Assembly (NCBI GenBank): GCA_039096225.1
Contig: JBBPEB010000015.1
Span: 1,798,001 to 1,862,000 of the forward strand
Source: Blastocystis sp. Blastoise
Taxonomy: Eukaryota; Protista; Bigyra: Opalinata
Direction: 5' to 3'
Length of the DNA stretch: 64,000 bases
The notes below the pieces were generated by a model, which was not told where the DNA came from, did no database searches, and saw nothing but the letters and a program-made list of their open reading frames with translations. The position numbers and the translations under genes are program-made. Within the stretch, counting starts at the first letter, position 1, and the number at the start of each line of letters is the position of its first letter. Of this stretch, positions 17,323 through 24,979 are shown in pieces.

Positions 17323-17989
17323 ATATATATATATATATTTAATAAACAATTATGTATTATAGTATTTTCAATACGTATACTTTTTATATTCATTGTTTTA
17401 TCTTGTTTTTATATATACGTGATAATGTTTATTTCATAAAAAAGTAATAAAATATCAAGTTATTGAATTCTTTGTATATAAAAGTGTTTAATATATTTAT
17501 TATTCAACTAATTAGATATATAATATATCACAACATACAGTATAGTCAATCCATGTTTTGACATTTCCTTTAATTCATATAAATCTGTTATTTATAGTAT
17601 ATATAGTATATAAGACATTTTTAATATATGCATTATTATTGACAACTAAGATATTGTTTACATTCTAAAGAGTTATAAAAAATAATAGAATTGGTTATTA
17701 TATAAATTAAAAGGTATTATCGTAGTAACACTATCAGCGATTTCCATGAATAAAAATGGCATTCTTTGCCATTTTTTTGCTTGTTTCTTTTTAAGTTTTT
17801 TTCAGCCAGGCGAAAAGAGTAGCCAAAAATTAGGTCATTTTTGTCGGATTTGGTCTTTCTTTTCATTCGTTCAGAATTCTTTTAGAAACGTCATTATTTT
17901 TATTTATTTTATCGTTGTGTGAATGATAATAAAAATATAATAACAAAAGACAATAAATAATAATATAATAATTATAACAATAGTAAAAT

Positions 17990-18545
17990 AATAGTTATTT
18001 GACTTTGATTTAAGTTAATTGTGAACCATTTTGAGGACTATACATGAAAAAAGATAAAATTAATAATAATATAGATAATAGATAAGTATATACCTTGATA
18101 GAACACATCTAGACCAACGAACGAAGAAGAACAAACACTATAAAAACAGAATGTAAAAATATATATATAATATAAGAATATACCTTCAACCACCAAGTAG
18201 TTGTTGGCCAAGGGAGACTTTATCAAGCACCTATTACCTTTAAAAAAATAAAAATAGTTAATTGTAAAAAAAAATAAAAACAATAATTACCTTTAAAACC
18301 ATGAAGACATGGACCAAGAAGACCTGACACAACAGTTGAACCTTTAGAAGATAATAAATAGTAATAACAAAAAGAATGTAAAAAAAATATACCTTTAATA
18401 ACCCCAGATTTCTAGTCACCTAAACCCCACAGCTCATTGTTTAACTGTAAAAATGAAGAGGAATCAGGACCTATTTGAATCTATTTTGAAGGACCAGTAA
18501 GCCTATATAGCATAAAATAAATAAAAAATATTATATACATTTTAT
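17990..18545 (-). ncRNA. Putative spliced non-coding (or decayed) transcript inside the CACTA element, 5 short introns
   Basis: GT-AG introns at 18503-18538, 18342-18392, 18238-18290, 18138-18183 and 18038-18093 separate GC-richer exons of 44-110 nt, four ending AAG|GT. Exon 2 has stops in all frames. Transcript ends are approximate. Confidence 0.5.
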
Positions 18546-19473
18546 AATATATAATATATAGTTGTAAATTAAATAAAAATAAAAATAAATATGTGAAAAT
18601 ATTGAATCTTATAAATAAAGAGAAATTCCCCCTTCCAATTTATTTTTTGTATAATAAAAGTCTTTAGAAAATCTTGGTTTCCAGGGGTTAAAACATTTTA
18701 AAATTTTCCCTTTTTCTCTTTTATAAAGTCTATTTGAATTTAAAAATGATTTATAAATGTATTATGTGTTTATGAACCTTAATTATTTAATTTAAACATG
18801 TTTAAGACTTATTAAAACGAAAGAATCGTTATTTTTAAAAGTTTTAATTTCAATTAAATATATTTGTCTGTCATTTTTATTCAATAGTATTTTATTTATA
18901 ATAAGAAGGTAATAAAGAAGCAGAAAATATATTTAGTATAATTAATTATAGAAACATGATTCACAATTCATAAACTTTTGTTTTTTATAAGTTTTATTCC
19001 AACGAATTACAGAGTATTATAAGTGACTGAATAAATTGAGACTTTTTAAAAGGTCATTAAGTTGTTTTAGAAATAATAAAGAATGCAATTTATTAAAGTA
19101 TAAAGTAGATTCATATTTTATCTCTTTCTTTCTATTATTCTAAAAGAATTCTATAAATAATTTTATTACTAAATACTACAAAACAAAAAGAATAATATAT
19201 AAGTTAATAAACACAATAAAAGATAGATAAAAAAGATAATATATAGTATATATATAGTAGTATATCATTATAATACATATAATATAAATATATATGAAAC
19301 TTCTTTCTATCCTATATATACATGATTATAAAACTAAGTATAATCTAAATATATATATATATATTGATATAGTAATATAATATATATATATATATATATA
19401 TATATATATATATATATATATATATATATATATATATATATATATATATATATATATATATATATATATATAC

Positions 19474-23193: not shown

Positions 23194-23350
23194 CTATATA
23201 TATATTAATAATAATAATAATAATAATAATAATAATAATAATAATAATAATAATAATAATAATAATAATAATAATAATAATAATAATAATAATAATAATA
23301 ATAATAATAATAATAAATAAATAAATAAATAAATATCTATATGGACTTAC

Positions 23351-23800
23351 TATTTTTATTTGGAAAGCACGAAACTATAATCAGGATTCATAAATGGTGA
23401 CACGAAAACCATCATTCTATATAATATATAATTTAATAAGAATAAAATATAAAGATATATATAATAAACAAATAATAAATAAATATTTTAATAGAGGAAA
23501 ACAAAAAAATGGAAAAAGAGTTAATGCAACATAAAAATTTATATACTATATTTACATACCTTTAACAGTGTTTTGAGTTGCTGTCTGAAAGAAGCCAGTG
23601 AAGTATTCAAGGAACCTTTTAAGAACTGAGCCAACGAGTACACATCATAGAACCTTTTGGGATAGACACAGAAGACTGGCTGACGGGAAGAGAAAACCCA
23701 GAATCGAAAACCTAAAAGAATTATGAAAAATATTTTGATATATTCTATAACTAAATACTGAAATAGCATAACACTGCTTAGAATGACCGGCAATCCTTAT
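23351..23800 (-). other. Putative element-derived leader exons positioned to splice into the SCC2 fragment
   Basis: Exons at ~23759-23800, 23560-23711 (ends AAG|GTATGT) and 23351-23416 (donor GTAAGT), then an intron to the exon starting at 23193. No continuous ORF across them. Confidence 0.45.
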
Positions 23801-24979
23801 AATATAGTCTATTTATTCTTATAGACAACAAATTAAAAATAAAGATAAATTCATATTTAAAGTCAATTTTTTAGTCAAATACTAAAAATTTTCATAAATA
23901 TTCATTTTTAATTTTTTTAAAATTTTTTATTACTCAGTACTATAGTAACAAGTTTTAAACGTTATGTACTGAGCTATTGACACAACACTATTGTATCTGA
24001 CTACTTTCAAGTTTTAGAAAATTACTCATTTTTGTTGACTCTCTGATCTGTTGACTGACTCGTCTAAAAACTATTAATTTTGACTTAAAACATTTGTATA
24101 TTACATAATTAACTCTAAAAATGACTTTTTGAGAGACTTTTATTTGATTCTGAGAAAAAACAATTATTTAAAACTCTTTGACAATTTGTTTTTATGCGGA
24201 ACTTTAAGTCATGATAGAATAAAATGAAAAAAGTCTTTTAAAACTCTTCTGTCGTCTGATATATAACAAAATAAAAATAGACTCAGTTTTGAACAAGAAA
24301 AATATTCCCGTAAATATTTTAATAATTCAAAACTCTGGTCTGACTGCCCATGGAACAAATAGGCTCGGCTCTTTTTTCACTGTAAAAAATTTATAAATTT
24401 TTGACTTTTTGGCTGAATTTTGGTTTTGACCTGTAGAGGTCACTTCATTCAATTTTACACATACTTGTGACTCTGAGAGGGTCTTCACTTTAAACAGACC
24501 AACAAAAGGTTTTAAAATATTGACCCCATTATTTGTCGGAATTGCGACTTAAAACAAAAGAAAAACGTTTTGGATATTATGTGACCTTGTATAAATAAAA
24601 AATAATGCCAATACTTTGATAAAATATGCTTAACATGAATTTTAGAGTCTAATAAAAAATCAACTGAAAAAAAGTGTCAAAATTTTGTCAAAAATCACGA
24701 TTTTTGCCTAAGTCGCTGAAGAAAAGCTCTTTTCATTGGTGGAAAAAATTTTTAACTAAAATCAGCCAATCAAATGCATTTAAATGCTCAATTATCGCTG
24801 ATAGTGTAAACTACATGAACAATGCAATTATCCTTATATTTGAAACAATAATATTTTTTAAATATATTTTTTATATTCTGAATAAAGAAATATAATATAT
24901 AAATATATAAAAGAAAAGAAAAAGAAAATCAATATATATTAATAAATAATAGTATACAAATATATGAATAATGAATTGG

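Follow-up and report, generated by a model that had tools for sequence, protein, structure and literature searches.

The window that we analysed (64,000 bp of Blastocystis sp. Blastoise, C4:1798001-1862000 of the 33.3-Mb, 34-contig assembly G000) contains a 7,078-bp element at positions 17729-24806, bounded by perfect 13-bp terminal inverted repeats (TIRs) of the CACTA type and carrying a fragment of a host gene, SCC2/NIPBL. The left TIR, CACTATCAGCGAT (17729-17741, plus strand), is the same as that of the autonomous 13.6-kb elements described below, and the right TIR (24794-24806, minus strand) is its exact reverse complement; at either side the element is flanked by TAA, a 3-bp target-site duplication (TSD; 17726-17728 and 24807-24809). 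Going inwards, a left arm (17729-19521) meets the cargo (19526-23316, minus strand) in an (AAT)n tract (junction A, 19522-19564), within which the breakpoint cannot be placed more finely, and the cargo meets the right arm (23317-24806) in a second (AAT)n tract (junction B, 23206-23316). An initial annotation of the window had reported the same TIRs, flanks and enclosed length, and these coordinates held, with the termini recurring genome-wide.

On the window alone the inverted pairing of the 13-mer is weak (at least two matches at two mismatches or fewer in 20 of 100 shuffled sequences). In the genome, the exact 13-mer CACTATCAGCGAT occurs 21 times, mainly as inverted pairs spaced 6.85 kb or 13.6 kb, and with one mismatch allowed there are 35 matches versus 10 for the reversed control. 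The genome-wide recurrence of the 13-mer together with the arms indicates that the TIR pairing is real despite the weak statistics of the window. In agreement with the initial annotation no transposase was recognised inside the element: a Pfam search with ten internal open reading frames (ORFs) gave only a weak, sub-threshold PHD match, and a tblastn search with the three transposases of the family itself gave no match in this element or in seven related elements of 6-8 kb. ARAGORN found no tRNA in the sequence analysed, and Rfam returned only microRNA noise driven by (TA)n.

The cargo (~3.7-3.8 kb, multi-exon, with the introns kept) is collinear with C18:750673-755009, in blocks of 83-95% identity that are broken by microsatellite introns of variable length, in line with the ~3.7-kb intron-containing host gene fragment noted initially. 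SCC2-type cargo was found in at least seven element copies, autonomous ones included, and at a single locus outside the elements, on contig C18, which matches the cargo only and has neither the arms of the family nor real TIRs. Close to the host gene, two 13-mers that resemble the TIR (C18:749196 and C18:749277) were rejected as chance matches, situated in coding-like sequence and lacking arm homology. As the introns are retained in the cargo, the capture took place at the DNA level, and with an arm-less parent gene at hand the proposal of a Pack-CACTA element formed by DNA-mediated capture in a unicellular eukaryote was borne out. Two details of that proposal had to be revised: the parent gene resides on C18 and not between RAD50 and ZW10, and the capture is not private to the window copy.

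Several lines of evidence led us to read the C18 gene as SCC2/NIPBL; the cargo would then be copied from the middle of this gene, including a PHD-finger-like piece in one cargo exon (21980-22036, minus strand; PF00628, E 0.0087, below threshold, in the exon translation). The C18 locus opens with a 757-amino-acid exon and runs downstream into the only Nipped-B_C match of the genome (28.9 bits, cut-off 26.4). The largest host exon inside the captured region gave a sub-threshold Cohesin_HEAT match, its PDB matches were NIPBL chains only, and its protein-atlas clusters were annotated as Cohesin_HEAT. A PDB sequence search with one exon of the window and one with one host exon gave no match, and a genome-wide search with Cohesin_HEAT was too insensitive to inform. 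The introns of both cargo and host gene are mostly (TA)n or (AAT)n microsatellites with canonical GT...AG ends, and they are spliced; in the window, microsatellite tracts lie at 19380-19475, 20757-20800, 21772-21907, 22365-22410 and 23206-23316.

The element belongs to a sizeable family: for each of its 400-bp ends the genome has 40 or more matching loci (76-100% identity). The closest relative is a twin at C25:298834-305686, which has the TSD TTT and flanks unrelated to those in the window, and which differs by 4 substitutions over 6,811 aligned bases; the remaining differences are length changes in microsatellite tracts. Such near-identity at a site with another TSD points to very recent movement. 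Together with a more diverged copy on C17, which has the TSD TTT, the twin shows that the element moved after the capture. The relatives of 6-8 kb have arms in common that measure ~1.6 kb on the left and 1.1-1.5 kb on the right (~75-88% identity), so that the conservation of the arms extends over 1.1-1.6 kb; in the window, positions 17775-19378 of the left arm are ~80% conserved, both in these relatives and in the autonomous element of 12.1 kb, and the right arm is 75-88% identical to those of the 6-8-kb relatives. The centres differ and fall into three types. The SCC2 type is found in the window, C25 and C17 copies and, in part, on C28; type b, seen in C8 and C21, recurs at 17 loci or more, and type c, seen in C24 and C29, at 30 or more. 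The expectation that related copies would carry different cargo was thus borne out only by half: two other centres exist, but they are high-copy, and neither type had Pfam content or an arm-less parent that we could identify. They may be a second gene of the element itself or older captures. The common centres of the non-autonomous 6-8-kb relatives are represented by L004:2600-6240 and L003:3090-6030, one of which has an asparagine-rich ORF of 424 amino acids.

The TIRs of all relatives start with CACT(A/G), with the variants CACTATCAGGTCAT, CACTGGTAGGCA, CACTGTCAGGCAT and CACTACCGTCG. Of the 19 copies checked, 17 are flanked by a perfect TSD of 3 bp that varies in sequence (TAA, TTT, TAT, AAA, AGA, TTT, ATT, TAT, ATT, TGT, ATT, GAT, TTG, ATG, ATT, GTT and AAC); these are the paired copies with different TSDs that the initial annotation had anticipated. 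A target preference, suggested by the near-palindromic empty site in the window, was not general: among the other sites only the one on C8 is palindromic.

Some copies deviate in structure. L003 (G000:C24:490453-497017) has an exact left TIR of the window type, a right TIR that is the reverse complement of CACTATGAGGCGC, and flanks that are unequal (ATT on one side, TTT on the other); it may have arisen as a hybrid between two parents and been immobile since, an intermediate as predicted by Catoni et al. Two elements are nested or composite: at C13:747090-776936 an exact TIR pair with the TSD ATT encloses 29.8 kb, and at C5:485955-498378 a 12.4-kb insertion interrupts the 12.1-kb element of that contig. 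L023 (G000:C28:277904-283627) has the cargo and the right arm; in place of the left arm, the (AAT)n junction is preceded by unrelated sequence in which there is a GC-rich motif resembling a hairpin, so this copy is truncated or interrupted.

Two types of autonomous elements, of 12.1 kb and 13.6 kb, occur in the family, both with CACTA TIRs and 3-bp TSDs. The 12.1-kb elements (C23:197271-209382, and further copies on C5 and C19) have TIRs that begin with CACTACCGTCG and TSDs ATT (C23) and TAT (C5); the right end of the C19 copy was not found. Their 744-amino-acid ORF matches PF02992 (Transposase_21) at 29.6 bits (cut-off 28.6) and has a weak DUF4218 tail, so that the autonomous relative with a Transposase_21/Tnp2 domain that had been predicted does exist, a result with which a profile search agrees (see below). 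The 13.6-kb elements are represented by ~10 paired copies, nine of them with perfect TSDs, and two copies are only 2 substitutions apart over 13,616 bases. Their 13-bp TIR is identical to that of the window element, and 77 bp at the left and 540 bp at the right end are alike at 79-87% (79% for the last 540 bp). Pfam did not recognise their 807-amino-acid ORF, even at E 10; the ORF is homologous to the 744-amino-acid protein over its whole length (E 2e-17). Downstream of it lies a 2.6-kb array of diverged tandem repeats (~7507-10160 of the 13.6-kb element, L002 and L010; 74-80% self-similarity).

A profile built from three transposase paralogues and searched against 1.84 billion representatives retrieved 261 relatives. 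Among 50 sampled relatives we found Transposase_21 in 39 (best E 3e-99), DUF4218 in 28, Transpos_assoc in 10 and DUF4216 in 8. This set of domains corresponds to the classical architecture of the CACTA TnpD protein, and membership of the CACTA/EnSpm (CMC) superfamily is therefore firmly supported. In the numbering of P0001 (the annotated protein of the 12.1-kb element on C19), D248, D338, E679, H655 and H659 are near-invariant and C357 and C360 invariant; D248/D338/E679 with the C..C and H...H pairs may represent the catalytic set of the CMC signature. Given the same 13-bp TIR and the similar subterminal sequence, we infer that the transposase of the 13.6-kb elements would cut and paste the window element in trans.

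That the window/C25 type of cargo undergoes transcription and splicing was shown by a comparison of contigs from run X1 with window positions 19570-21770, beside the (TA)n run at 21772-21907; run X1 was taken to be RNA by guess, and the contigs give no expression level, strand or transcript ends. Contigs of run X1 have zero differences to this segment, from which the host gene is ~5-6% off in substitutions and more when indels are counted. In one X1 contig, which has 0 differences to the window, position 21351 is followed directly by 21425, and the skipped 73 bp (21352-21424) form a GT...AG intron on the minus strand; a second one likewise skips ~20745-20847. The spliced junction 21351/21425 was absent from all fetched copies (as a 60-nt string) and, at one mismatch or fewer, from the whole genome (as a 24-nt pattern). 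It is this exact identity, in combination with a splice junction that the genome lacks, that points to transcription of the window/C25 type. Run X2, a polyA metatranscriptome of a different gut sample, also gave contigs, over window positions 19756-21770, that are 3-4% diverged and in which the microsatellite introns are skipped as well, which hints that the sample from this other host held a relative of the strain, also a Blastocystis, in which the same sequence is present, in an element or in the host gene.

Both arm-cargo junctions lie inside (AAT)n tracts, and the host introns have (AAT)n at the same points. Relatives without the cargo have (AAT)-type tracts at the matching positions of the arms (C24 at both junctions, C8 at junction B). 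The window, C25 and C17 have junction A in common, and C23 has it with an additional small deletion; junction B is common to the window, C25, C17 and one copy on C28 (C28a). That the cargo-bearing copies which retain these junctions share them speaks for a capture that took place once and was then propagated. A likely course of events is that SCC2 DNA once replaced the centre of an ancestral element, by joining or recombination within the (AAT)n of the element and of the SCC2 introns. The microsatellites would have provided the homology for joining, either in template switching of repair synthesis during gap repair after excision, or in complementary aberrant excisions of two neighbouring insertions, as in the model of Catoni et al. 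(PMC6379663). Several sublineages would then have carried the cargo along, some of which would have landed beside a transposase gene, the annotated model of which now ends in exons derived from SCC2.

That gene model is P0001, a 1,143-amino-acid 'hypothetical protein' annotated on C19 in a 12.1-kb autonomous element (loci C19 and C23; L015-L018). Residues 1-898 map to exons of the Tnp2-type transposase and residues 898-1143 to exons in the captured, SCC2-derived segment, so that P0001 is predicted to be a transposase-host chimera at the level of the annotated gene model. One may speculate that the SCC2 exons are indeed spliced to the 12.1-kb transposase, that the resulting HEAT tail of a cohesin loader alters the place or time of integration, and that the family is an active exon-shuffling system; we regard this as a long shot. 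If true, exon shuffling would be active in an asexual gut protist and the captured exons would be more than passengers.

The joined gene model also bears on the question which element made the capture. It might have been an autonomous element, in which case the window element would be an internal-deletion derivative of an element with both transposase and SCC2; the 12.1-kb elements on C23, C5 and C19 share its left arm and contain some of its cargo, and their gene model joins the transposase to cargo exons. However, these elements lack both the cargo on the side of the right arm (~4340-5588 of the window-type element) and the right arm of the family, their junction A has an extra deletion and hence a derived state, and their TIR differs (CACTACCGTCG...). 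They rather resemble recombinants that acquired a left half of the window type. The cargo tree is star-like and unable to order autonomous and non-autonomous capture; on balance we consider a capture by an autonomous element unlikely.

The direction of transfer might also have been the reverse, the SCC2-like centre being the transposon's own gene that was donated to the gene on C18. Such a donation is compatible with the presence of the cargo in at least seven element copies versus only one non-element locus and with a cargo tree that does not root. Nevertheless, C18 has no arms or TIRs, its segment is continuous with the 757-amino-acid upstream exon and the only Nipped-B_C domain of the genome, and the captured region resembles cohesin HEAT repeats, as expected of a conserved eukaryotic gene. 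Moreover, when compared in the frames of the host gene, which were defined by open reading frames and thus include some intron sequence, the element copies have 5-6% substitutions that are spread nearly evenly over the three codon positions, as well as 8-17 frameshifting indels (17 in the window copy), which identifies them as decaying fragments and makes a donation to C18 highly improbable. Two further readings can practically be dismissed, namely a PIF/Harbinger-type element, for which a TAA target duplication is typical, and a segmental duplication with inverted repeats around it by chance, with which the weak 13-mer statistics of the window would agree, since the TSDs are varied and not restricted to TAA/TTA (GAT, TGT, AAC, AGA, TTG and ATG occur), as fits CACTA/EnSpm, the related autonomous elements encode Tnp2-type transposases, and the copies stop exactly at the TIRs with unrelated flanks.

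We conclude that the window element is very probably a non-autonomous CACTA/EnSpm (CMC) element of the Pack-CACTA kind, in which a single capture of SCC2 sequence is transcribed and would be mobilised in trans. It has the features of Pack-TYPE elements, namely the lack of a transposase, a host-gene fragment with its parent elsewhere and movement after the capture. Some observations weigh against this conclusion. The identification of SCC2 comes from one domain match above the cut-off, beside the cargo region, and from sub-threshold matches within it. Two of the 19 copies (on C24 and C21) have unequal flanks. The cargo tree does not place the host as outgroup and is silent on the order of events, which leaves the shared junctions as the argument for a single capture. 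Mobilisation by the 13.6-kb element follows from the identity of the TIRs, the likeness farther in being the 79-87% over 77 and 540 bp given above. The nature of run X1 was guessed, for which the precise removal of GT-AG introns argues in favour of RNA. Finally, neither an empty site nor an excision footprint was observed, the reads examined covering positions 19570-21770.

CACTA elements with captured host genes have been found in plants, for instance Tgm-Express of soybean and Tpn1 of Ipomoea, which end in CACTA, have long subterminal arms and contain captured segments of host genes, introns included, with chimeric splicing as a possible outcome. The window element resembles them in the termini, the long arms and the intron-containing segment, and differs in its host, which is not a plant. 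Autonomous EnSpm/CACTA elements (TnpD/Tnp2) have counterparts in the 12.1-kb and 13.6-kb relatives with respect to CACTA TIRs and 3-bp TSDs, and the relatives of their transposases have PF02992, DUF4218, DUF4216 and Transpos_assoc; the Blastocystis proteins themselves are very divergent (27.7-29.6 bits against a Pfam cut-off of 28.6), and the window element carries none of the transposase domains. With the Pack-CACTA elements of Arabidopsis the window element shares the non-autonomous nature, TIRs, a 3-bp TSD, a host gene fragment, mobility after the capture and transcription (PMC6379663, PMC8903248). In contrast to these, it is found in a stramenopile gut protist, it contains one long, multi-exon fragment of 3.8 kb instead of several short ones, both its junctions lie in (AAT)n microsatellites, and the same cargo is present in autonomous relatives, where it was annotated as the tail of a transposase gene.

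The strain (Rus-B, from a Russian tortoise) has a genome of 33.3 Mb in 33 contigs with 23% GC, and the Blastocystis genome paper gives transposable elements as a bulk share only (5.6-7.5%; PMC10690189). In the literature library searched, no paper joins Blastocystis with CACTA. The window element represents a familiar type of transposon, found here in a lineage for which it has not been described earlier. Pack-TYPE elements have been described as found in plants, and transduplication of this type has been treated as a plant phenomenon (Catoni et al. 2019, PMC6379663; Gisby & Catoni 2022, PMC8903248), whereas we here encounter a clean, near-textbook case in a stramenopile gut symbiont. It combines an identifiable parent gene, microsatellite junctions that suggest the mode of joining, an autonomous element as candidate partner, transcripts of the cargo and a chimera in the annotation. 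The near-identical copies imply that the family is currently active, so that Blastocystis genomics gains a concrete, active family of DNA transposons, and a small system, amenable to culture, where one could follow how CACTA elements capture genes.

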